From the NCBI GenBank assembly GCA_020891255.1, contig BQFW01000015.1, positions 558,001-622,000 of the forward strand: a stretch of 64,000 bases of DNA, read 5' to 3'. The notes under the pieces were generated by a model, which had not been told where the DNA came from, searched no databases, and saw only the letters and a program-made list of their open reading frames with translations. Each line of letters opens with the position of its first letter. Position 1 is the first letter of the stretch. The translations under genes and the position numbers were made by a program. Positions 39,143 to 55,857 of the stretch are shown piece by piece. The DNA is from Entomortierella parvispora E1425 (Eukaryota; Fungi; Mortierellomycota).

Positions 39143-40714
39143 CTAAGCCGCTCTTGCCAAATAGCGAGACCCATCTGCAGGTTCGTCACGTTTTCGGACA
39201 GACACCCAGTTAGTCTCCAAAGCTTGAATTGTGGAGTCGTCCGCTCCGCGCCGGCGCATAGCCTTTAGTGTCCTCATAAACATTTTATCACTAGGAAGAA
39301 GACCGTAGTTGTCCTGCATGATCTGCATCCACCTCCAGGCGCGACCCCAACGGCCCCGAGCACCCATCAGCTCACTGTTGACCATGATTTGGAATGTGTT
39401 GAAGTCGGGTCCAAAGCATGGTGCCTTTGACCCCAGTGTCTTCACTGGATTTGTCATAGAAGACGATGACGATGTGTCGCTTATTTCCTGAATCTTGTCC
39501 AAATTCTGACCAATTTGTACAAGCTCCTTGAATAAATCGATAGCATCTCCGTCCCTTCGTGAAAGGAACGCGAACTTGATCATCTCGTTATAGGTTCTGG
39601 TTGTAGGAACAACTCCAAACAGCCGGACGTGACTTTCGAACATGGCTCGCAAGGCGTCAATGTCCTGGGTATACGCGTAGTAGCCGAAGAGAGTGTGGAT
39701 GTTCTGTATGCTAGGGTAGAGTTTCGTAACCGACTTTTGGGTACTTTTGTTCCTTGAGCTGTTCGCGGGGTTGGTGTTGAGAGTGCCTCCATGCAGCGTT
39801 CTGGGCTTTTGGCCTAATGGAATTGCCATCAGTTCTGACGTCGATCCTTGCTGACGGTAGGCCTTCTGTAGACTCAAAGCACTAGGCTGCCCCGTCGTGT
39901 CGGAATCCTGAGTAGTGACAAATGCCGAACGAAATGCAGCCTCAATTGCAGACCAGTTCTTCATCGCTGTGTGGACCTGTAGAACATAGTCCCAACTAGT
40001 AGTGTCGGGCTGGACTCCTGCACGTTTCATGGATTGGATTACGTCGGATGCAAGGTCGATATTCTTCCGAGGGACACACGATTTTAGGATTAGGTTATAT
40101 GTGAATAGGGTCGGCAGTAGCGGAGGTCCTCCAGAGGCTCTTCCTCCTGCCATCTCGGCTGACATCTCTCTCCAGGTCTGATCCACGGTTGCGTATTGCC
40201 TTGTGGCGACAAAAAATTCCAGTCGTGTGGTGTAGTTGTTCATGTCTGGCTGGATATTACAGCTCAACATCCCCGCCCAGACTTGCTCAAACCGCTTTGT
40301 GAGTTTTTGGACTTCAAGGGTTGTGAATCGCTTTGGGTCCGCAGGACGGATGCTCTTGAGAAGCAGGCTATGGTGAATCGGCAAGAGAGACGACAACTGA
40401 CCCGCTCGACTCAAGACGGAATATATCATCCAGGCAGTATCCTGATCTTTGCTTTGAATAGCTGATAAAAGTGGAGCAGCTTGGTCGTACGAGGGCGAAG
40501 TTCGCATAGCCTTGGGATTAATAGGGATGGGTCGGGTTTGTGAATGAAGTTGCTCTGGCAAGAAGGTCTTAGGAAGATCCACTGAATCATGGTTGCGGGA
40601 GAAAAAGCTGAATGTGGAATAATGACATCTAGAGAAGGCGCCTGCCGTGGCGCTGGATCGGGCGCGGAGGATGAGTCTCGTGCAGATCTGCTGTGTTAAT
40701 GCGGTGCTGGCCAT
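39143..40714 (-). CDS. Mitochondrial pentatricopeptide-repeat protein, intronless
   Basis: Presequence-like N-terminus. PPR motifs PDMNNYTTRL, PTLFTYNLILKSCV, PDTTSWDYVLQVH, PTTRTYNEMIKFA and PDFNTFQIMVN. Confidence 0.9.
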   Translation of the reverse strand: MASTALTQQICTRLILRARSSATAGAFSRCHYSTFSFFSRNHDSVDLPKTFLPEQLHSQTRPIPINPKAMRTSPSYDQAAPLLSAIQSKDQDTAWMIYSVLSRAGQLSSLLPIHHSLLLKSIRPADPKRFTTLEVQKLTKRFEQVWAGMLSCNIQPDMNNYTTRLEFFVATRQYATVDQTWREMSAEMAGGRASGGPPLLPTLFTYNLILKSCVPRKNIDLASDVIQSMKRAGVQPDTTSWDYVLQVHTAMKNWSAIEAAFRSAFVTTQDSDTTGQPSALSLQKAYRQQGSTSELMAIPLGQKPRTLHGGTLNTNPANSSRNKSTQKSVTKLYPSIQNIHTLFGYYAYTQDIDALRAMFESHVRLFGVVPTTRTYNEMIKFAFLSRRDGDAIDLFKELVQIGQNLDKIQEISDTSSSSSMTNPVKTLGSKAPCFGPDFNTFQIMVNSELMGARGRWGRAWRWMQIMQDNYGLLPSDKMFMRTLKAMRRRGADDSTIQALETNWVSVRKRDEPADGSRYLARAA

Positions 40715-40829
40715 GCCGGATGATCAAGGGTTAATGATTCGAGTGCAAGTTGATCACCGTGAAGTGAAGTGTACCTTGAAACCTTTAAATAGTGGCTTAG
40801 TTTGTAGATATTGCGTATACTTGTATACT

Positions 40830-43800
40830 TTATTCATTCTGTGGTGTGTTGTCCAGGTTGGCGTCTTGTGCAATCGTATGCCCATGTATATCGCTGTTCT
40901 CGAGGGGCATGATTCGCCCATCGCCGGCGTGAAAGATTTGATTAAAATCAGACATTAGGAGAGAGAACACCCCTGCCGGGATACCCAAGGTTGGAGAAAA
41001 TACGATGCCAACGTTGCGCGCAGTCATCTTGTTCACGTCCGCATTGTCTACGATCTCAATCAAGTGAGCCGTTAATGCTCGTAGGATTGTGTAATTTGCT
41101 TCTGGAAGACTTGCGACAAGGCGTGTCAGCTCATTTACACGATCCTCTCGACTAGACAACTCTGTAGAATGAAAACGAGTTAATAAATCGGTCTCTGGTT
41201 CTACAGTGAACAAGAAAAAGATATTTAGATAATTTATGTCCTTACCAACGACTTGTAGAAAATCCTTGTGCAACTCCCGTGTTAACACCGATGATGGCAA
41301 GTCTCGCAGATACAACTTCAACAAGCCAGCCACGGCATGAATATCATAATAGTCTTCGCTCGCCAACAATTGAACGTCACCCTCATGATTAAATCTCTCT
41401 TTGAGATTCTTGATAACGGCAGAGGAGCCGTTGAGCCGATAGATGCCCTCCTCCATCTTTGCTCGGTGAGCATTTAAGTATTCTATGCACCTGTAAACCA
41501 CTGCCGGAAGCTGGTAACCTGAGAGAACTCGGGCTTGCTCAATCGCTTGTTCAAGGGGCACACCAAAGATCTGACGGATAGGAGCTAATGGAGGATAAGA
41601 CACCGAGCCTGGTGCTGAAGGTGGCAAGATGTTTGAAGCGCTACTTCCCGCCCCAGCGCCACTACTACTGGAGGTCTTTCCCAAAAAATACTTCAGCCTT
41701 GATGAATCTTGGGGAGGTTGAGAAGGGGAAGAAGTCGGTAGGTTCTGCGCATTGCTTGCACTAGGCGCAGTGCCAGGCATTGCTGGTGGTGACTCCTCTT
41801 TTTTCTTTGGCCAGAATGTCATCCTTGATTTTTGCTTCTTCTCCGCAGGATCGCCAGATGTCAAAACAGGTGATCCAGACAGGCCCTCTAGCGACTGCTT
41901 TTACAATGGCAATTGTGATCGCAGGAAATGGTCAGTTAACTGTAGCCAAATAGCTGCACAGCTCCCTATTCCTAATTCGATGGTAGAGATATTCAAGGAA
42001 CTTACGTCGTCCTGAGGAGAGGACTGGGCCGTTGGATTCCTCGGAAGTTGTTGAGTAACACTGACATTATTACAGCCTTTTGAAGTTGGTGCAGGTTGGC
42101 CTTCAGTTGATGGCCTCTCTGTCGACTGTCTGTCATCGAAAGGTCCGCTCTGGATAGTGGGTGACTGAGGTAAGCCTCCTCCTCGACCTCCAGCCGGCTG
42201 ATTCAAAACTGAAGAAGATATCGAACGTGCCTGGGTATCATAGGAGTCCTGGCTATACAAAATCTTTTCGCTTCCTTTGGATGTGAGGTCCTTAGGTGCA
42301 GAGATCGACTTTTGGTCATCGGAGGACTTCTTCCTAGTACGATCCCGGTCAGTTCCTCCTGTTGAATCGCCAAGCTCTTTTCCTACATAAAGCATTAGAG
42401 CATCAACCCATTGGTCTCGCTCTTGATCCGTCTCCGCGCAGAGAACGTGACGGATAACATTGTTGGGGTTTTTCTTGGCATCTATCACCGATTGTCCTTT
42501 CTTAGGCTCGAGAATGAGAAAAGCATGTCTGTAAGAGTTGGGATCGATCACACCGTCTTTAGTGTTCTCTTGAGACCGTTCTTGAGTTTGCTGTCGCCCA
42601 ATTTGCGCATTCGTTAGAGATATGCTTCCGAGATGATGGCCATCCTTCTAAATAGCGATATTACAAGAGGTCACGAGCTGCAATTCACCGCGATCACACG
42701 ACACCAAAATATATAATCCACTTACTGCATCAAGATATTCCAAGACAGGACCCCTCAGCATGAAGTATCGTGTCTTCCATCCTCCAAAATTCTTGCCGCG
42801 CTTTGTCAAGTATCCCTCCTTCCATCTGGCATCACGGCTTAGTGGAGCGATCTCGCGCTCAACAACATTTGTGCTTAGAAACTCACACAAGTCACGCGTA
42901 TCTTTAATACGTAATGACGTGATTTGCTGCAGATACTGCTCCAATGCGATCTTTCGAGCATCGACTTTTGATGGCGCATGGTTGTTGAAGAGACTCTTTT
43001 CGGGCAGTTTTGGAAGAGAGTTAATAATATTCCTTGACTGAGTAACACGCAACTAGAGGACAAATGAGAAAGTAAGCCGTCGATAGCCTTAAATTCGCGC
43101 TCATTTCTATCGGCCCATCAATTTTCACGAATCTCGTGCCTCCTACCTTTGCATCAAGATTAACAAAGTCGGTATATTGCTTTTCGACCCTCCAAAGTTC
43201 GTCACTTTCCTTATGAGGACACATGCCTTCAGGTGAATTTTGCACTTCCTGCCCAATCGAGATAAAAAAAGTCAGCTGTTCCTTGCCTCTGTCGTTCGCG
43301 TTGATATTGCTGCCTACAACAAGAACAGACACAAATTCAAGATTGTCCGCAAACATGCTGAAAGCCTGTTGATGGTACGTAGGAGCAGAGCGAGATTGAG
43401 ATTGTGACGGTTGCACACTGGTCAAGGCATTGACCAGAGATGAATTTCCAGAGGGTGTGGGTGAGGCAACACGCCTAGGGCGAGTACTGTCATGGTCAGG
43501 AGACTGTTCCAGCAGATTTTGTGAGTCGTAGCGTCTAGGCAAGACGGGCATAGTAAAGTCCGTCAACGACGCGTCTTCGTCGTTATGCTGCTGCAATGCT
43601 GACCGAGACAATATCTTTGGAAGTTCGTCAGTCAGGTGCAGTGACGAATCGCGTTTCCTGCTTCGTATATCGGAAGGCAATGAGAGCTGACTGTTGTTAT
43701 TTTCCATGGCATCAGCAAGCGCTCCCTGGTCGCTCCCATCCCCATGCTCCATAGAATGCTTTGATGTCGACTCGTGCAACAGAATGGGGGCTGATATATT

Positions 43801-45573
43801 GTTGTGGTTGCGCGCCGTTTGCTTCAGTCCACGGCCGCCGTGGCCTAAGAAGAAGAGAAATAAGCCTCAGTGGTCTTACATATACAATGGACATTTAAGA
43901 AACATAAAATATATGCGTACTCTGAACCTGAACCAAGAGCTGGTTTTGGATCTCAAGTTGTTGCTGGATATTCTCCATCGCTACAGCCTGACCAAGAGCT
44001 GATGCGAGATCTTGCTTACTGCCTGCTGCCTGAATTGGAGCTGAGACATTTCGCCGATTTGGATTGTTTAGCTTGTCCATGTAAATTCTGAACTTTTCAG
44101 CATCTTGGTCAATTATAGCAGCAATAGGGGAGGCTGGTGTTGCAACCGAGCTGATGGCTGTTGAAGACGAGACCAAACCAAGTTCCATAGAGCCTTTCGG
44201 CCACTCCAATCCCACAGATGAGATCGATGGGATCTGGGCAGAGATATTCTTACGAGTAGCCTTGCCTATGGCATTGTCTGCGCTGGACGGAGCTTCGTTG
44301 ACGTACAGACCGGTGACCTTCGTGGCGGAGATGATGAATTCATCGTCATGGCCCTGTGATTCTAGAGGCAGTGACTGAAGAGGTTGTTTCAGGGAGTTTG
44401 TCGAATAAGCCGAATGGTGATCTCCTGTTACTTTGGTTGCCCCTCGGACTCTGCTTGGAGAGGACGTCTGAGCTGCCTCGTCTTCATTGTCTGACACCGC
44501 CGGCGACATGTTATCTCCAATGTCTCTCCGTTCCCTCCGCGGCGACCGTGGCGGCAAATGTGGCATGTGTGGCAAAGACAAAGCATAAGTCAAATTGCCC
44601 GAAACGTTGCGACTATTTGTTGGGCTCGTGGCAGCTGAGGATGATGATGAGGAGCGATATTGACCTGAGGTTGCACGAGCAATAAAAAAAATTAGCTAAG
44701 AGTGACAGGCTGGGCTCTCTGTACTTGACAACTGTACTGGAACTGACCTGGTGGGAGGTCGTTCTCGATGGCAAGGGTCGGCGAGGTAAAGGATACGGCT
44801 TGATGTGACGTGTTCAATATAAGCGTCGACTTCTGCTCTGGATCGTTTGTGGTGTCCTGGAATGGACGCTGTTCCTCTGATTGACTATCGATATTACCAT
44901 CTGTAATGGCAGGAGCATAGTCTCTGCGAACAGGAGCAGGTGTGTTGGTGGCAGACTCTGCGGGATCGAGATGGAGGGATGTTTGGGCGTGGTTTTGGCG
45001 ATCGAGCGTCAATGAACCTGTAGTCGCCAACTTCTCTCCTGGATGGACAACTTCCTGGCCATTACCCAAATTTTTGTCTTCCTCGGGAGTATACAAACTA
45101 GGGGCAGAGGACAACGAGGTTACCTTCGCACCCTGACTATCGATCTCTAGAGTAGAAGATACATTCAATCGATCCTGCTGTGGCGAGTCCTTGTCTCGAG
45201 AAGTCTTTCTTTCAGAAGTGTGCCTGACATGTTGCTGATAGCCGCTGGTTTTGGCTGCAGGCATCAGGTCAGAGGCGATGCTGTTAGTGCTGCTGAAGTT
45301 ATCGGAGCGGAATGAGGTGCTTTCAGAGGAGAAATGACTGCGAAGAAGGTCCCGCTCGGCCACCGCCTTGGCAAGGTCCTTCTGAAGATTCTGGATGATG
45401 ATGCGCTGTTTTTCAATGATCTTCCAGAGCTGATCATTCTGGGATCGAAGCGAGTTACGTTCTGCGGTGACCTGTTGCAGAGCGACATCAACATCCTGGA
45501 GTGGCGCTTGGGCCGATTCGTGGCTGTGTCCATGCCCCTGGGAGGAGGAGTCGGACCGGGTGCTTTGAGACAT
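40830..45573 (-). CDS. BEM3: Bem3-like Rho/Cdc42 GAP (coiled coil, PX, PH, RhoGAP), multi-exon
   Basis: ERNSLRSQNDQLWKIIEKQR; PX (WRVEKQYTDFVNLDAK...LPKLPEKSLFNNHAPSKVDARKIALEQYL); PH (KEGYLTKRGKNFGGWKTRYF); RhoGAP (IFGVPLEQAI, PAVVYRCIEYL, EEGIYRLNGS, NKMTARNVGIVFSPTL). Confidence 0.9.
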
Positions 45574-46258
45574 GATGCTGGCTAGGAGGAGCGGATGTCC
45601 CAGCGGTGAATGAGTCTGCGTGAGTGTGCGAATGTGCCTTGTGCCTTGTGCGTGGATGTGAGTGTGGGTGCGTGAATGTGTGTGCCGGCCTGGATGTGGC
45701 TCCAGAAGTCGGGAGAGAGCTGCAGGTGCGAATGTGGGGATTTGAAAGCAGGCGGGAGGGTGGAGAGGATGATGATGGTGATGATGTTCTGCACGACCGC
45801 AGATTGAAAGAGCACAACGCGGGGCTGTGCAACCCGCAGGAAGGGCGTCTCGTCAATTTCGCCTCCGTCTCCCTTGTTCTCTTCCCTGCCCTTCTGCCCT
45901 TTCCTGCCCTTTCCTGCCCTTCGTGCGCCCTCCCGCATGCGGCAGCAGTGGCACTCCAGAATCAACAGAGCAAACAACAAACGGACCACCAGCGTGCAGT
46001 CTTGCCCTCCCCCTCTCCCCTCTCTCTCTCTCTCAATTCGCTTGTTTGTGCCACAAGTTCCTCTTTCCATCCTCTGTGGCTCTCTCGTCTCCTTTCCCTG
46101 CAAGCATTCAATCTTCCGCCAGGATCCATCCCCTCCCCTCCCCTCCTTCCCACCCCATTCATCCTCGCCCCTCAAAAGAAAGTAATCCCAGGCAGTGTGC
46201 CTGTGGATCGCCTCTCTTTCCTTCTTGATCTAAACTCTGTACTCGGCCCTCCACCCAC

Positions 46259-49200
46259 ATGTCAAAGTCGTGCCAACCGTCAGCCGTGTCTCCATCTGCC
46301 TCAGCTTCGAGTCATGACACGCACTCGTTACCACCAAACTTCAAAGGCGCTATCCAGCGGTACCTTGCTGTGAGTTTGCCCACAGTGACCTTCAGTCAAG
46401 AACTGATCGAAGTGCTTGACGAGGCAGGGATCCTTATTCCTTCCAGGATCAAGGTTACAATGCGTTGGTGGAAAGAAGACGCGTCCAGCTCACTATCTGT
46501 CTATCCAAACATCAATGGCCTCCTTCATCCAGCCATTGCGGCCCACCAATCCCAGCTGCGATTAGAACAAGGCGATGATCCTCACATCGATGGTAGCCTG
46601 TTGCCAACACAAGCCTATCCGCAAACCCAGACAGAGAGTTCATACAGCTTGCAAAAGCCAGACTTGCAGCCGCAAACGCGTTGTTCTATGGATGTCGCAA
46701 CCACTTCCCCGCCATCCAAGAAGCCTTGGGTGGGAGCCCGTTTCTTGAACGCGCTTATCAGGCGAAAGAAAGGCTCTGGGCAAACGTTAAAAGGCACACG
46801 AGTAGGAACTCCCCATCCACAACCACATGCGCCACTACCGCAAGGAGGCCATCTTTCCCCCACACAAGATACCACTACCAGAAAACCTCTACCATTGCTA
46901 CCTCCTGCGGCATTCCCTCTGACGGTGGCTTACCCTATCCGATGCTCACTTGAACAACTTCGTCGCTATTTTCTGGAACTCTCCGTGCTAACACTTGATA
47001 TCCACATCGCTCCAGATCTCGTTGCCTCAACCACAGTCCAGAATCTCAGCGACCTGTTCCACAACATCAATGGCACATTCTCAGGCGTGTTCCCATTTAC
47101 ACACATCGTCAAGAACGCATCCACCTCTCTCACACAGGAGAACTCGCTTCGGCCTGGTACAGTTCTCGGCATGGTTGTTTTCCAAGCTTGGGCTCAAGAC
47201 ACTTCCCAAGTTAGCGAGACATCTGAAGAGTCAGAGTCTGCGTCCACTACTTCGATGTCTATCCCACAACACTATAAAAGGGCATCTTTTAATTCACGTC
47301 ACTCTAACTCTCGATCGCAGCTCCAAGGAAGTGCTTTACCTCGAGGAGGAGACGTTGGTGTCGCTCATCATGGCACAAGGAAAGACTTTTCCCGTCAGCT
47401 ACACCCCTCCATGTTGAGCGAAGGTCTCGCTCAATATCCAACACTGTTGAACCGTCGCCAGCTGCCGCCCCATTTGCGCAGCCATCTTGGTGATAGACAT
47501 CATCGCCAACATCTTATAGACGGTTCAAGGCCACTAACACGACACTCAAGAGAGCAGAAGGTGACCATTCCGGAACCGAGAACTGATATCGCTGCGAGAA
47601 CAAAAGCTTTTAGCAGGCGGTTTGATGAGTCACAACCGTATGAAAACAGGCCCAAATCTCAGGATACCCAAAGGTCCAATGCCGCTAATAGTCAAACATC
47701 CCGATCTCGACCACGCTCAGGTGCCACTGCGGCGGCTATTGGTCGATTGGATGCAGTTCTTTCCCGTGGACAGGATCTTCTTCAAGGTATGACGCAAACC
47801 ATTTACAAAGCACGCTCAAATGAACGTGTTCTTGTCTTTCACTGACTCTTACATACCCACCATCTCCTTTGTGGATATTAGGTATGAGGACAAGTCTTGC
47901 GTTGGATCCCTTAGAAGTTCGTGCGAGATCCTCAAAACCCTCTCTGACAACAGATTTACATAATCCCGACGATGATAAGCTGCCATACTGGCCGTCAAAG
48001 TCTCGATTTATCCTGGAGGTCGCCATCCCTACGGCATACTTGACCACACGTGGGCTATTGAAAGGATCTGCCGGAGCAACTGAGCTGCGACCACGCCACC
48101 ATGGAAGACGACAACACGAAAAAGACGCCACCCTTTCGAACTTACACTCGGAATCCCATGAACCTGGACTCACGTCATTCATGGGCTCCTTTTCACAAAA
48201 GGACAGTGCCACGAGATCATTGCGTCGATCAGTGGCACCTATACCGTTCGGAGTGGCTTTTTCGTCCGCTGGGCGGTCAACAGGGTCTTTGAGGAAAGAC
48301 TATCAATCGTCCGAAAAAAAACCTTCAAAACAAATTCTTGATAAAACCTTGAACAGCGATACGGACCGGCACCCCCCCTTGGCCAGGCCGCAGGTGCATG
48401 CGTTCCGTTCAAGCCCAAGTCCTGATCTTCGAAGATCAGGCCCTAGCACCCTGTCGGCCCTGCGACCATCGCTATTGACACGCCAGGGATATAAACGATC
48501 GTCATCACATAGAAGCCCGCTCTCAGATGATACGTTTAAATCGCAAAAGAGACGTCTCAGTGACAACGACCGCCTTCAGATCCGGATGAACCCTCGAGCA
48601 GGGGAACTATTTGCCGATCTCCCTGATCTTTTTCCTGTTCGAAGCATGTCTGCCCTTCTTAAACCTGAGTACCCGTCAACGAGCGAAGGCAGCCATGTGT
48701 CAGAGCATAGAGGCTCAGACTTGGGCATGACGAGCAATGCATCCGAATCGAGCAGTCATATATCAGCGAGATCCGAGCGAAGGGGCTTATCAGGTCGACA
48801 ATCCCGACTTCAAAAACGACCCAAAGAGTCAACTACCAACCAGCATGGTTTGAAACATGGATCTGCGCAAGATAGACGGGCCAATGCCTATTCCAAGGCA
48901 AGCAGGATAATGTCGATAACAGACCCCATCCATGCTCAGCATTTCGACTTTAAGGCGCAATGTCCTCTTGCACTTACTCCCGAGATTATGGCAGCCTGCA
49001 TGCTTGAGAATATTTCGGTTGAATTATGGAAGTTGAATCACAAACGGCAAACAATGATCGAGCTTGGAACCGCTAAGCTGCCATTGCACAAGATACTTGG
49101 CCGGATCATTCAAAAGGATGTCGCACTGTCCAGTCTCCATGCTGACAAGAGTTTTACGTTTCGCCGGGATAACCTTGAACCAGAGAGGCATTCTTCTCGG

Positions 49201-49392
49201 GCACAAAGGAGAAAGGCTGAATATTCAAGATTTGGAAAAGACAATAGCTCCTGTAGAGAAGGATGGAGACTCGAACCATCCCTGTATGACATTCGATCTA
49301 GACATGGTACCGTCATCGGCCAGTTGGATGCCGACGTTTGGATCCATCCCCGCTCTCGTTCAAATTCTTTGGTGGTCTCTGCTGCCGCGTAG
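46259..49392 (+). CDS. C2CD3-like protein (N-terminal C2CD3-type C2 domain plus a second C2-like domain), 2 exons, about 1012 aa
   Basis: Exons 46259-47786 and 47882-49392 (GT-AG, phase 1). Motifs [59 protein letters not shown] and FDFKAQCPLALT...SVELW...LGTAKLPLHKIL. Confidence 0.78.
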
Positions 49393-49544: not shown

Positions 49545-52500
49545 ATGCAGGACGCGTCTAACGATGCACCCCTTTCCCAGGAGGAGCGAGAACGTGTAAT
49601 AAGAGTGATGGGATACCTTTTCATACAAGCATCCTCGTGGTGCAATGGCCTTGCTAATTACGCCTGACTCATTTTCATTAGATTCGCCTTAAGCGGCTTG
49701 AAAAACTCCAGGGAACCCAGGAAACGCAGAGAATTGCAGTCGCCTCATCTTCTTCCAGTCCCGACATATCTGTCGGCCCTTCATCACTGCCACCTCCTCC
49801 TCGGTCAACCACGCCAAAAGATATTATTACCAAGAGCCCAATTCTTACAAAGGTGTGCATTCGCAGCCAATTGCGCACTGGCAATATAGACTCCATCATG
49901 ACTTAATGAAACTGCATTCCACCCTATATAGCCTGCCAGCCCAACTGCGCCGAAGCAGCCTGCTCTTTCATTTGAAGCCTGGCAAAACGAAGCTCTCTCT
50001 CGAATTTTGTTGGTCTCACTGGTATGGTTACTCTTGCGCCTTTAAATGATCATTTGCTTGGTCCTGACCTTCCTCTCTTATTTTAGAATGAAAAGGCGGC
50101 TGCGCCACTTTTGTTTCTATCGAGTCTTGCGAAAGAACTTCAGGCGGAGAATGGTAACCTTGACTATAAGCATTAGCATTTTGGAATTTTGACGAGGAAA
50201 CCTGCTCACTGCCTTCTCGATCACCCTGTGCACTATAGAGCCATTGACGATCAACCAGGCTTCTTTGGATCGGGTACTTGTGGATCGTATGTCGATGGAC
50301 CCTAAGGAGGTGGAAAATGCACACCTACTTGATCGTGGACAGCTGCAGTACTCTCTTTTTGACTACCTTTTGGATTGCTGGAAGAGACTGGAGAATGTCA
50401 AGTTACAAACGTCCAGAGCCAAAGTAAGATCGGCTGGTGTGACCCGTACCTGGTATCCGAATGCCTCTGACTTTACTTTAACCACAATGCGAATGTTAGA
50501 CTCTCCCCAAAAGCGTCATTGAAGAGCGTGTCCATTCTCTCAATTGTTCTAAGGGCCTCCTTGTGTCGTACTCAGGCCTAGTTCTTCAAATGCCCGATAT
50601 GTTCCCCCAGCCTCAAAGGTACTCATTTTATGACCCTATTAGTCAAGGTTTCGCTTCTGCCTATAACTAACAACGCTTTGTCACCATGTATAGCTCTCGT
50701 CCCCTGGGCTCCTCTCAGTTAGTTGAACGTCTTTTAGCAGACCCGGATTCACCTTCAGGAGTTCCTATGGAATTCTTGAAGGATCTGTCTGTGAGATTTA
50801 AGGAGGATGGCTTAGAGAACATAATTCAGCCGCTGGTGTCAGGAGTTGCTGCTAAAGCCAGGAATGCCTCTATTTTGACAGACTGGAGAACTCCAATGAG
50901 GGCGTTGCTTGCATTGATTGAAATTCCGGGAATTGCCGCTGCCATTCCTCAAGGCGCAACATGGAATCCACCGAACGCCACTGCTCGGCAAATTGAGATT
51001 GTATCCACACTTGGCCCTTTCTTCAAAACGTCAGGGTTTTGCATCGATGATGTAAGCTGTATTGAATATGTGTATGTTCGTCAATACTTTACACAAGTGC
51101 TAACATGAATTGTTTCCTGAAATAGCCCTCTGTGGCAGAATTGTTTGGTACTGGATTGAAAAGAAATAAGGCAGACTCAAGCGGAGCCTTTGCTTCTATT
51201 CGTGGAACTGTCAGGGGGATTCATACTTCGCTCTTTCAAGCAACAAATGGCATTATTCGATCGGCTCCGGAAGCCAGAGAACGAATGTTGGAATATTTTT
51301 ACTCAATCTTGAAGAAAAACGAACGCCGAGCCCAGATGCAGGTTGATCGTGCAACTGTCTCTGGTGACGGCTTCATCTTCAACATATCGGAAGTCCTCAT
51401 GCAATTCTGTGACCCCTTCATGGACAGTCAACACTCAAGGGTCGATAGAATATCCCAAACTTTCTTCAGAGGGAAGTCGAGGATCGACATCAGCAAGGAG
51501 ACGAGAATATGTGCCTCCAAGGAAAAAGTAGATGAGTTCTCCGCGGATCCAGAATCTTCGACTGTCAACTTCATATCCGACATATTTTTCCTCACCTTGG
51601 GATTTCATCATATTGGCTTGTCCAGAATGTATGTGGACTACAAGCGGTTCACGAAGGACTTTTATGAAATGAGAGACCAGTACGATCGCCTGAAAGAACA
51701 AGAGGCAGCTGGACAACTGTCAGCCGAGAATGGACTACTGATCAAAAGATATGAGATGCAGTTGGAGAAAATGCTGACCTTTCGACTTTCGATGCAGTCT
51801 CAGATCTTGGACCCGATCATCCTGAACCATTCGTTTCGCTTCTACAATTTGGTCATGGTGTGGTTGCTCAGAGTTGTCGACGAGTCTCATGCGTATCCGC
51901 AAAAGCCCATGCAGCTGCCTTTACCTGACCAGCCAAACGACAACTTCGCAATCCTGCCAGAATTTGTGATTGAAGATATTGTCGAATTTTTCCTCTTCGT
52001 CCTTCGACACTCGCCAGAGACTGTTGGATCGTCAACACTAGATGAACTAGTCACCTTTACTGTGGTTTTTTTGGTTACTCCCGGATATATCAAGAACCCT
52101 CATTTAAAGGCTAAGCTTGTGGAGGTTTGTTTTCGAAATGCCATACTCCTTTTTTTTGACATGAGACATGTAGTATGAAATATGAAGGCTGACTTGGACT
52201 GAGTATCTGTAGATCCTCTTTTATATGACCCTTCCATACCGTGGTCAAAGAAATGACGATACTCTGGGTATCAAACTTAACACGCACCCCGTGGCACTAA
52301 GATATTTGATTCCGGCTATCATGAACTTCTACGTTGAGGTAGAAAACACTGGACGACACTCACAATTTTACGACAAGTTCAATATTCGATACAACATCTC
52401 TCAGATCCTCAAATTTGTCTGGACCAATCCAATTCACCGTGACATGGTGAAAGCGGAGAGCAAGTAAGAGAGTTATTTCGAAGCATGTGTTGACTGTCTA

Positions 52501-53708
52501 AAACCCCTCTTGCTGATATGAACTTCTTTAAATAGACGCTCAGAGACATTCGTTCGGTTCGCAAACTTACTTATGAATGATACCACGTACTTGTTGGACG
52601 AGGGTTTGACCAAGCTTGTAGAGATCCACGAAATCGAGGTCGAAATGGAGGACAAAACAGCCTGGGCCACCGCCTCACCCCAGCACAGGCAAGAACGGGA
52701 AGGTGTTATGAGGACAGCTCAGCGCCAGGCCTCGTCCTACATTGCGCTTGGAAATGAGACAGTGAATATGCTGGCATACATGACGCAAGAGATCAAAGAG
52801 CCTTTTTTGACTGCAGAAATTGTTGATCGGCTTGCCACCATGTTGGACTACAACCTTGTAATCCTAGTGGGTGAAAAAATGTCTACCCTCAAAGTAAGAC
52901 GCCGCAACACCCTGCTTTATTATTCTATAAGATGCCAAACTCATCGTTTGTACGTATCCATTTGTAATGCCTTAGGTCAAAAATCCGGAAGAATATCGAT
53001 TCCAGCCCCGTGTTCTTCTTTCGGATATCATTGCAATATATTTGCATCTAGACTGCCCAGCCTTCATCGCAGCTCTTGCACGGGATGACCGCAGTTATAG
53101 TGCTGTTATTTTTAGCAAGGCTAGCCGCATTCTCGAAGGACGCAATCTCAAGAGCCCAGATGAGATCTCGAAGCTGCATAGGCTAGTTAGCAAAGTGGAG
53201 GATGTTCGACAACAAGGTGCAGCTGATGAAGAAGAACTTGGCGATATCCCTGATGACTTTTTAGGTATTGTAATCTCCTTGCTTTCGGTGTTATTTACAT
53301 GATGACTATGCTAGCTAATGACGGCTACTGACATACTCTTGTCTCTTTTGCTCATAGATCCACTTCTCTATACTCTCATGGAAGACCCTGTAATCTTACC
53401 AACGTCTCAGATATCAATTGATCGGAGCACAATCAAATCCCACCTTCTTTCAGACACCACGGACCCATTCAACCGAATGCCTTTGAAGATTGGTGATGTC
53501 ATAGACGGTAACATTGGACGAGATAATTAATGATCAAAGGCTTTTGATGTTTGCATTCTCAGAAAATGAAAACTGATTTTTTTTTTTTTTTTTTTTTGTA
53601 AACAAAGATGTTGATCTGAAAACAAGAATACAGACGTGGAAAAATGCCCAGAGATCAAAGAGACTTAACCAAGACCAGCAATCGGAATCCATGGATGTTG
53701 ATAAATAA
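49545..53708 (+). CDS. UFD2: U-box ubiquitin chain elongation factor E4, multi-exon
   Basis: [67 protein letters not shown]; U-box [43 protein letters not shown]. Last exon ends ESMDVDK* at 53708. Confidence 0.96.
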
Positions 53709-54987: not shown

Positions 54988-55857
54988 CACCCTGGCCCCC
55001 AACCTCTTCTCAGCAGCCACATTCCGCTTCCCCCAACCTGAACACTACAGTACAAGGGCGAACGAGACGGCTTCAAATGCGAGATCTGGCTCACTGCAAT
55101 CACTCGCCTCTTCAAAGGAGCCCGCATACCCGACAACGAACGCGCCTTGCACGCAACCATCTTCCTCACCGACGATGCTACCTTGTGGTGGGAGGGCAAT
55201 GCCCTCTCTGACGATGCCCCCTGGGATGACTTTGTCGATGCCTTCCGTGCTGCTTTCCAACCTGCCGGCTTCATCGACCAAGTGCGCAACATGTTATTTG
55301 ATATCAAGATGACCTCTACGGTATCGGACTACGTAGCGCGCACCCGCACGTACATGTCATTCCTGTGCCCCTACGATATGAACGCCGAGGCTCGTTCCAC
55401 CCTTGAACAGGCCGCTACTTCGTGCTTCTTGAAGGGTGCTCCCAAAGATCTCCAACAGGTTCTCCTGACTTACAAGCTCAACAATCCTAAGTGCACTATC
55501 CAAAATCTGTGCAGCCTAGCCGAGCAGTTCGATCAGATCTACGAGTACAAAGTTCGCCCCCCTTCTTCGTCTTCCTCTACAGGACTTGACTATACTGCTG
55601 CCAGCGCTAACGCTGCTAAGGACTCCAGCATGGCAATGGACATCGATAACATCACCGCTGCTGCACTTGTGAAGACTATCAACAACCTATCTATCCAGGT
55701 CAATAACCTCTCTAGAAATAACAACCGATCTCGCTCCGGCCACCACCAAGACTCTTCTCTGAAAAGACTGACACCGGAAGACAAACAATATCTCATCAAA
55801 AACAACGGTTGCTTTCGCCGCCGCAAGATCAATGCCGGTCACTACGCCACGTTGTAA
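54988..55857 (+). pseudogene. Gag of element A (retrotransposon gag), frameshifted
   Basis: FRFPQPEH[5-nt insertion]YKGERDGFKCEIWL...ATLWWEG...FRAAFQP...FLKGAP...AMDIDN. The stop at 55855-55857 is supplied by the inserted LTR of B. Confidence 0.85.
55046..55052. other. Putative Tc1/mariner excision footprint TACAGTA in gag A
   Basis: Removing 5 nt joins the frames of ORFs 54956 and 55147 into PEHYKGERDG. Confidence 0.75.

Follow-up and report, generated by a model that had tools for sequence, protein, structure and literature searches.

A reduced, SAS-1-like member of the C2CD3 family predicted in Entomortierella parvispora and other non-flagellated fungi of the Mortierellaceae

The DNA considered here (the window) is a stretch of 64,000 nucleotides from the fungus Entomortierella parvispora E1425 (contig BQFW01000015.1, positions 558,001 to 622,000), and the gene in question occupies positions 46259-49392 of its plus strand, on which all of the features of the gene given below also lie. 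A first-pass annotation had proposed from the letters alone that this is an intact homolog of the centriole and cilium gene C2CD3 in a fungus lacking flagella. Comparison with profiles, relatives and predicted structures supports this proposal well: the gene encodes a real C2CD3-family homologue, which is best classed among the family's variants as a reduced one resembling SAS-1. The gene consists of two exons encoding 1012 residues. Exon 1 (46259..47786), read as an open reading frame (ORF), contains 509 codons and the initial base of one for Gly; a predicted intron of 95 nucleotides (47787..47881) with GT..AG borders and a ctgac branch-like site interrupts this codon in phase 1; and exon 2 (47882..49392) completes the Gly codon with two bases and continues with 502 codons before the TAG stop at 49390-49392. 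The translation of the whole gene is identical to a public protein, GJJ78497.1 (EMPS_10856, "hypothetical protein", UniProt A0A9P3HLP8, 1012 residues), which matches both exon 1 (residues 1-509) and exon 2 (residues 511-1012) at 100% identity, thereby confirming the gene model and the organism. The proposal of an intact gene with one clean intron thus holds, as does the length of about 1012 residues, which turned out to be exact; the protein is about half as long as in animals. Human C2CD3 has a length of roughly 2,300 residues. The species is assigned to Mortierellaceae in the NCBI taxonomy, and fungi of the zygomycete lineages, from Zoopagomycota onward, lack flagella (PMC6899921). The host was thus rightly taken to be non-flagellated, and not a flagellated fungus of the chytrid type, in which such a gene would be expected.

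Sequence searches with the window gene were run one exon at a time. Exon 1 was found to match only one Pfam family, PF25339 (C2_C2CD3_N), in two collinear stretches with an E-value of 4.9e-13 and a score of 49.6 bits, the gathering score of the family being 27. Seven more Mortierellaceae orthologues likewise match PF25339 and none of the other C2 families, with scores of 45-50 bits across the eight proteins. The best stretch varies by species, being either the first half of the profile (positions 3-51) or the second half (positions 63-132), indicating that the proteins contain both halves, one after the other, with an insertion between them. The first half in E. parvispora (residues 22-100; 46322..46558) contains the motifs SLPPxxKG and VTMRWWKED, matches PF25339 positions 3-51, aligns with relatives in hhalign and is modelled by AlphaFold as strands with a predicted local distance difference test score (pLDDT) of 80-88. 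Its nonsynonymous divergence (dN) is 0.12-0.15, with synonymous divergence (dS) saturated. It is followed by a disordered loop of about 108 residues (46559..46882), which is poorly conserved (amino acid identity 0.26-0.32, dN 0.75-0.85) except for the motif KKPWxGARFLNA. The second half (residues 209-316; 46883..47206) matches PF25339 positions 66-123 and contains a 14-residue motif leading to LDI, together with GTFSGVFPF and VVFQAW. In the AlphaFold model (ten orthologues), the ordered segments 34-103 and 222-314, with pLDDT values mostly of 65-88 in these blocks, form one beta sandwich around the disordered loop, which takes up about 115 residues in the model. When the trimmed model was searched with VIA-align, all 50 of the 50 best matches were C2 domains, headed by those of RPGRIP1L (Z 9.5, 134 residues aligned, root-mean-square deviation 3.3) and CEP120 (C2C, Z 9.2). 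Foldseek and ESM Atlas searches pointed weakly to C2 domains too, the Foldseek E-values against the PDB being weak, and sequence searches of the PDB with both exons and three profiles returned nothing meaningful. Taken together, the profile matches and the model give good support to the assignment of residues from about 22 to 316 as a C2CD3-type N-terminal C2 domain split by a disordered loop.

How far does this domain extend beyond the family in which it was found? A profile built only from the Mortierellaceae domain was compared with 1.84 billion cluster-representative proteins at E <= 1e-3, and 21 proteins were recovered. Twenty of these were strong matches, and all of those with a displayed source came from Mortierellaceae (Entomortierella, Mortierella, Podila, Linnemannia, Gamsiella, Actinomortierella and Haplosporangium). 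The remaining protein, an outsider with an E-value of 1.1e-4 that matches the second half of the domain, belongs to a cluster containing KAL6617335.1 of Neocallimastix sp. The Neocallimastix proteins score 83-91 bits over the entire PF25339 profile, about 40 bits above the Mortierellaceae proteins, indicating that PF25339 was not built around Mortierellaceae and that the match is not circular. Their relatives in Anaeromyces and Piromyces carry the UniRef name "C2CD3 N-terminal C2 domain-containing protein". Alignment with three Neocallimastigomycota sequences by hhalign gave two collinear matches, one for the first half (residues 22-89 to 38-107, probability 94%, E 1e-7) and one for the second half (residues 223-303 to 140-225, probability 81%, E 1.3e-5). 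The two groups have in common the signature SLPPxxKG; V..xWWxxD..x..x.YP; YPIxCxxxxLxxYF.......LDI, and the loop of the Mortierellaceae domain lies at the site of a shorter variable loop in Neocallimastigomycota. No relative was recovered by this search from Mucoromycotina, Glomeromycotina, Zoopagomycota or Dikarya, a result that leaves room for very divergent copies elsewhere, because the same profile also misses the C2CD3 proteins of animals and chytrids. For this reason, orthology rests on the Pfam profile and the Neocallimastigomycota bridge.

Beyond the N-terminal domain, the protein within Mortierellaceae is a mosaic of basic, Ser/Thr-rich linkers that can hardly be aligned and of invariant short blocks. 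The whole protein has an isoelectric point (pI) of 10.2, and the linkers have values of about 11; the first of them, a disordered segment at residues 331-478 (47249..47692), reaches 11.4. It is followed by a motif that spans the intron (residues 480-522; 47696..47919), consisting of SRSRPRSGATAAAIGRLDxVLxRGxDLLQ, the split glycine and MxTSLALDPxEV, with an amino acid identity of 0.94 and a dN of 0.05. Further along are the motif LPYWPSKSRFxLExxIPTAYLTxxGLLKG (residues 542-571; 47977..48066), the two basic motifs RRLSxNDRLQIRMNPR and LFPxRSMSALxxPE (residues 735-772; 48556..48669), and the invariant basic motif GRQSRLQKRP (residues 814-823; 48793..48822). The first of the two basic motifs reads RRRLSxNDRLQIRMNPR in the block listing of the orthologues, and its RRxS pattern resembles a site for a basophilic kinase, which it may be.

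The C-terminal end of the protein (residues 858-1012; 48925..49389) is a conserved domain that is beta-rich by its strand pattern and contains a variable insertion, with a dN of 0.07-0.12 and the consensus HFxFKAxCxLxLTPExMAACMxENISVExWKLNxKRQTMxELGxAKLPLH ... GWRLEPSxYDIRSRxGxxxGxLDAxxWxHPRSRS. Its core (residues 861-920; 48934-49113) matches the domain that follows C2CD3_N in Neocallimastigomycota loci. With hhalign, the match to the first conserved domain of the Neocallimastigomycota ORF had an E-value of 0.0018 with one sequence and of 1.4e-6 to 4.9e-6, at probabilities of 86-90%, with three genera, in a single aligned block of 33-59 residues. ESM Atlas feature searches gave weak C2-like leads (below 0.9-0.92), and exon 2 has no Pfam match. 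The domain is probably a divergent C2. A hint from BLAST that it might be a copy of the N-terminal C2 domain was rejected, the hhalign probability being 0.3%. The alignment moderately supports the C-terminal match as a second collinear piece of homology, so that the protein would represent the N-terminal part of a fungal C2CD3 whose long C-terminal body has been lost. That body may be visible in the Neocallimastix locus, where an ORF of 1673 codons without a Pfam match comes after the C2CD3_N exon on the same strand and is conserved in Anaeromyces and Piromyces. Long conserved ORFs, all without Pfam matches, lie 3' of the C2CD3_N exon in the three Neocallimastigomycota genomes (L003:12110-20186, L004:13668-15611 and L005:12632-14827), in regions with fragmentary gene calls, and probably represent a main part of fungal C2CD3 that has escaped annotation. 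The motifs AAIGRLD..., LPYWP... and RRRLS..., and the blocks flanking the C-terminal core, were found to have no counterpart in the downstream ORFs of Neocallimastix.

The first-pass annotation had based its proposal on five blocks of similarity to human C2CD3, and these fared differently. Blocks 1 to 3 lie inside the PF25339 match, and their strings were found at exon 1 residues 23-36, 66-73 and 225-248, so that a C2CD3 N-terminal profile does find the domain from which they were taken. The fourth string was located at residues 497-507 of the exon 1 translation, and block 4, of which 12 letters were quoted, is part of the intron-spanning motif, which is very strongly conserved in Mortierellaceae and is among those without a counterpart in Neocallimastix. 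The second C2-like region, represented by block 5, stands insofar as its core aligns with the Neocallimastigomycota domain; neither Pfam nor the predicted structure of this region corroborates it. The disordered insertions also described there are seen in both the AlphaFold model and the orthologue alignment.

Two orthologous loci, one on an ENA metagenome contig and one in Gryganskiella cystojenkinii (GCA_015852425.1), were compared with that of E. parvispora. In both of them the order of the RhoGAP-family gene (upstream, on the opposite strand), the C2CD3-like gene and Ufd2 is kept, and the exons are intact, encoding 1054 and 1069 residues. The phase-1 intron interrupts the same Gly codon in both loci, and its sequence is unrelated. 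Synonymous sites are saturated, with a proportion of synonymous differences (pS) of 0.6-0.9, so that only contrasts in dN, and not dN/dS ratios, are informative. The dN was 0.05-0.18 in the blocks of domains and motifs and 0.6-1.0 in the linkers, demonstrating strong purifying selection on the blocks; the dN/dS check envisaged at the outset thus yields constrained blocks through dN, the ratio itself being uninformative. These patterns suggest a functional, selectively maintained gene. Many of the gene models in public records of the orthologues are faulty (records P0001+P0014, P0004+P0022, P0008+P0020 and P0030; L001:6001-9271 and L002:6001-8154), and some are split in two at the conserved intron. 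The Gryganskiella model is cut down to 598 residues, against 1069 from the exon reading. The model of Podila verticillata, which bears the name "WW domain binding protein 4", is probably fused to a neighbour, since it includes a zf-U1 finger (residues 1098-1131). The orthologues of Actinomortierella wolfii and A. ambigua (P0033, P0034 and P0039) are modelled at 1653-1797 residues, against 1012-1394 residues elsewhere, and the matched domain of P0033 begins near residue 116; these long models represent either a real extension or a fused gene.

The distribution of the gene bears on a recent classification. A survey from 2026, which covered 394 flagellar proteins and 184 fungal proteomes, including several from Mortierellomycotina, lists C2CD3 in the available portion of its supplement as "flagellated fungi specific", with 19 proteins (PMC13358043). 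CEP162, POC1, POC5, CEP135, STIL and delta-tubulin are likewise listed there as specific to flagellated fungi, and CEP120, SAS-6, LRRCC1 and CEP164 as not specific. None of six Mortierellaceae orthologue accessions appears in that portion of the supplement. As far as that portion goes, the present finding corrects the classing of C2CD3 as restricted to flagellated fungi. The precomputed Pfam labels of the Mortierellaceae proteins already include PF25339, and no paper linking C2CD3 or centriole proteins to Mortierella was found in the literature. The retention of C2CD3 in Mortierellaceae therefore appears to be unreported, the domain being implicit in databases and undiscussed in the literature found.

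C2CD3 is defined by a C2CD3N-C2 domain followed by five PKC-C2 domains (PMC3495828). The human and vertebrate protein, an organiser of the centriole's distal lumen encoded by the OFD14 ciliopathy gene, has the same PF25339 domain at its extreme N-terminus, a downstream C2-like domain and long disordered regions. The fungal protein, to which this likeness is known through the PF25339 profile, differs in its 1012 residues, in the undetectable five-PKC-C2 array, in the 108-residue loop of its N-terminal domain and in its host without a flagellum or canonical centriole. Two features of canonical C2CD3 are hence absent from the present case, namely a tandem PKC-type C2 array and a host that builds centrioles or cilia. 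The N-terminal domain of mouse C2CD3 outweighs the PKC-C2 array in importance (PMC8239364). The N-terminus of human C2CD3 adjoins the A-microtubule, and the protein organises SFI1, centrin-2, CEP135 and SSNA1 into a network and is required for CEP162 to localise correctly (PMC12707624). SAS-1, the C2CD3 homologue of Caenorhabditis elegans, possesses a C2CD3N-like domain at its N-terminus and one C2 domain, is centriolar, and binds and stabilises microtubules (PMC4238951). Judged against its published architecture, the Mortierellaceae protein appears analogous in its reduced layout, with a C2CD3N-like domain at the N-terminus and a single putative C2-type domain at the C-terminus, and without a C2 array. 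Unlike the fungal protein, SAS-1 is shorter and works in true, although atypical, centrioles, and the linkers and motifs of the fungal protein are lineage-specific. By analogy, SAS-1 offers the best model of how the Mortierellaceae protein may work, through the binding and stabilisation of microtubules, and its minimal layout points to the N-terminal C2 and the next domain as the functional core of the family. The closest relatives found outside Mortierellaceae, those of Neocallimastigomycota (KAL6617335.1 of Neocallimastix, and the proteins of Anaeromyces robustus and Piromyces finnis), match in both halves of the N-terminal domain, in the position of the loop and probably in the next domain, whereas these fungi are flagellated and their locus runs on for more than 1,600 further conserved ORF codons. 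The C2 domains of CEP120 (C2A-C) and of RPGRIP1 and RPGRIP1L, the best structural matches (Z 9.5 and 9.2, 131-134 residues), are alike in fold only, with an identity of 13-16%, whereas Pfam gives C2CD3_N.

The explanation that we consider probable, with moderate rather than high confidence, is that the gene is a vertically inherited and functional, although much reduced, representative of the C2CD3/SAS-1 family that all of Mortierellaceae has kept, and whose product serves as a SAS-1-like, microtubule-proximal scaffold at the microtubule-organising centre. The protein has retained the C2CD3N-type C2 domain with its inserted loop, a basic, Ser/Thr-rich and disordered middle with five or six invariant motifs, and probably one C-terminal C2-like domain, which would be the counterpart of the domain that comes first after C2CD3N in flagellated fungi; the PKC-type C2 array downstream would have been lost. 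As SAS-1 does, and human C2CD3 with its N-terminal part, it may act as a scaffold close to the microtubules of the spindle pole body, this role being the most likely one because of the SAS-1-like minimal layout and the strongly basic linkers. Contact with microtubules would be made by the basic linkers and both C2-type domains, and the short motifs may recruit partners, for instance the Sfi1-centrin system or the distal-centriole proteins CEP162, CEP120 and CEP104. To our knowledge, Sfi1 and centrin are universal components of fungal spindle pole bodies.

Several points weigh against this explanation. The profile of the Mortierellaceae domain misses animal and chytrid C2CD3 at E <= 1e-3. No PKC-type C2 domain (PF00168) was detected in the window protein or in the seven other Mortierellaceae orthologues, so that the greater part of canonical C2CD3 is lacking. 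The assignment of the C-terminal domain as C2 is weak, only the one short block being aligned; the AlphaFold model of the C-terminal 284 residues is poor (pLDDT 42), and no C2-type Pfam family was found in this region among ten orthologues at E <= 10. The long Neocallimastigomycota ORF and the C2CD3_N exon are presumed to form one gene. The binding of human C2CD3 to microtubules was not reproduced in PMC12707624. The present case is known from sequence and predicted structure, and the transcription and splicing of the gene are predicted.

Could the protein have kept its ancestry and changed its task? C2 domains are generic modules for interaction with membranes and proteins (PMC3495828), and a descendant of C2CD3 could have been repurposed away from the microtubule-organising centre, for example in membrane or vesicle handling in coenocytic hyphae, the new role explaining its retention. 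The loss of the entire PKC-C2 array would fit such a history, as would the fast linkers and the lineage-specific motifs without a match in the Neocallimastix locus; moreover, the other non-flagellated fungi searched lack a recognisable gene and yet divide their nuclei. The parts that were kept, however, are those that in SAS-1 and C2CD3 are linked with closeness to microtubules (PMC4238951; PMC12707624), and repurposing is regarded as rather unlikely. A second alternative places the protein in an ordinary C2CD3/SAS-1 role, stabilising the distal part of a centriole-like ring in the Mortierellaceae spindle pole body or of a centriole in an undescribed stage of the life cycle. There is a parallel in Coemansia reversa, whose spindle pole body holds a ring of nine microtubules of unknown molecular composition (PMC6070874, citing McLaughlin 2015), and both C2-type domains of the present protein are under strong purifying selection. 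The survey supplement, in the portion available, points both ways, CEP120, SAS-6, LRRCC1 and CEP164 not being restricted to flagellated fungi and delta-tubulin, POC1, POC5, CEP135 and STIL being so (PMC13358043). With most of the C2CD3 body lost and the literature yielding no ultrastructural report of a ring in Mortierellaceae, this alternative is quite improbable. It is extremely improbable that the protein is no true relative of C2CD3, the likeness being due to chance, convergence on the C2 fold, a decaying pseudogene or an annotation artefact: the missed animal and chytrid proteins and the weak Foldseek E-values against the PDB would agree with this, but all eight proteins tested score well above the PF25339 cut-off of 27, the lone outside match among 1.84e9 proteins is itself a C2CD3_N protein, two independent collinear hhalign matches were obtained, and the frames are intact, the intron and synteny conserved and the dN low.

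The surroundings of the gene can be described briefly. The neighbouring spans at 39143-45573 (minus strand), 51132-53088 and 55147-55857 (both plus strand) contain an ORF with PPR repeats, a multi-exon RhoGAP gene, the gene for Ufd2, a ubiquitin-chain elongation factor, and, farther downstream, a fragment of a retrotransposon gag gene. The Gryganskiella orthologue of the upstream RhoGAP gene is modelled with PX, PH and RhoGAP domains. Between the C2CD3-like gene and this minus-strand RhoGAP-family gene is a CT-rich divergent promoter region of 685 bp common to both (45574..46258), which contains long CT-rich tracts and across which the GC skew switches sharply from +0.43 to -0.49. The cell-cycle boxes MCB and SCB were not found in this region, nor was a TATA motif.

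What does the gene mean for the family? The part of C2CD3 that survives without a canonical centriole appears to be the N-terminal C2 domain and the first domain that follows it, and a conserved, selected C2CD3 derivative throughout a culturable fungal family is a concrete protein to study. Some species of Mortierellaceae are genetically transformable. Extending the scaffold explanation, it can be proposed, although we consider it unlikely, that the Mortierellaceae spindle pole body keeps, at the molecular and perhaps also the structural level, a remnant of the distal centriole, in which the reduced C2CD3 together with CEP162, CEP120 and CEP104 would be placed on Sfi1-centrin, comparable to the ring of Coemansia. 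How the centriole was replaced by the spindle pole body in fungi is an open question, for which the one structural hint to date is the centriole-like ring of a single zygomycete (PMC6070874). If the proposal is true, the remnant module would be the first tractable molecular handle on the evolution of the spindle pole body from the centriole.

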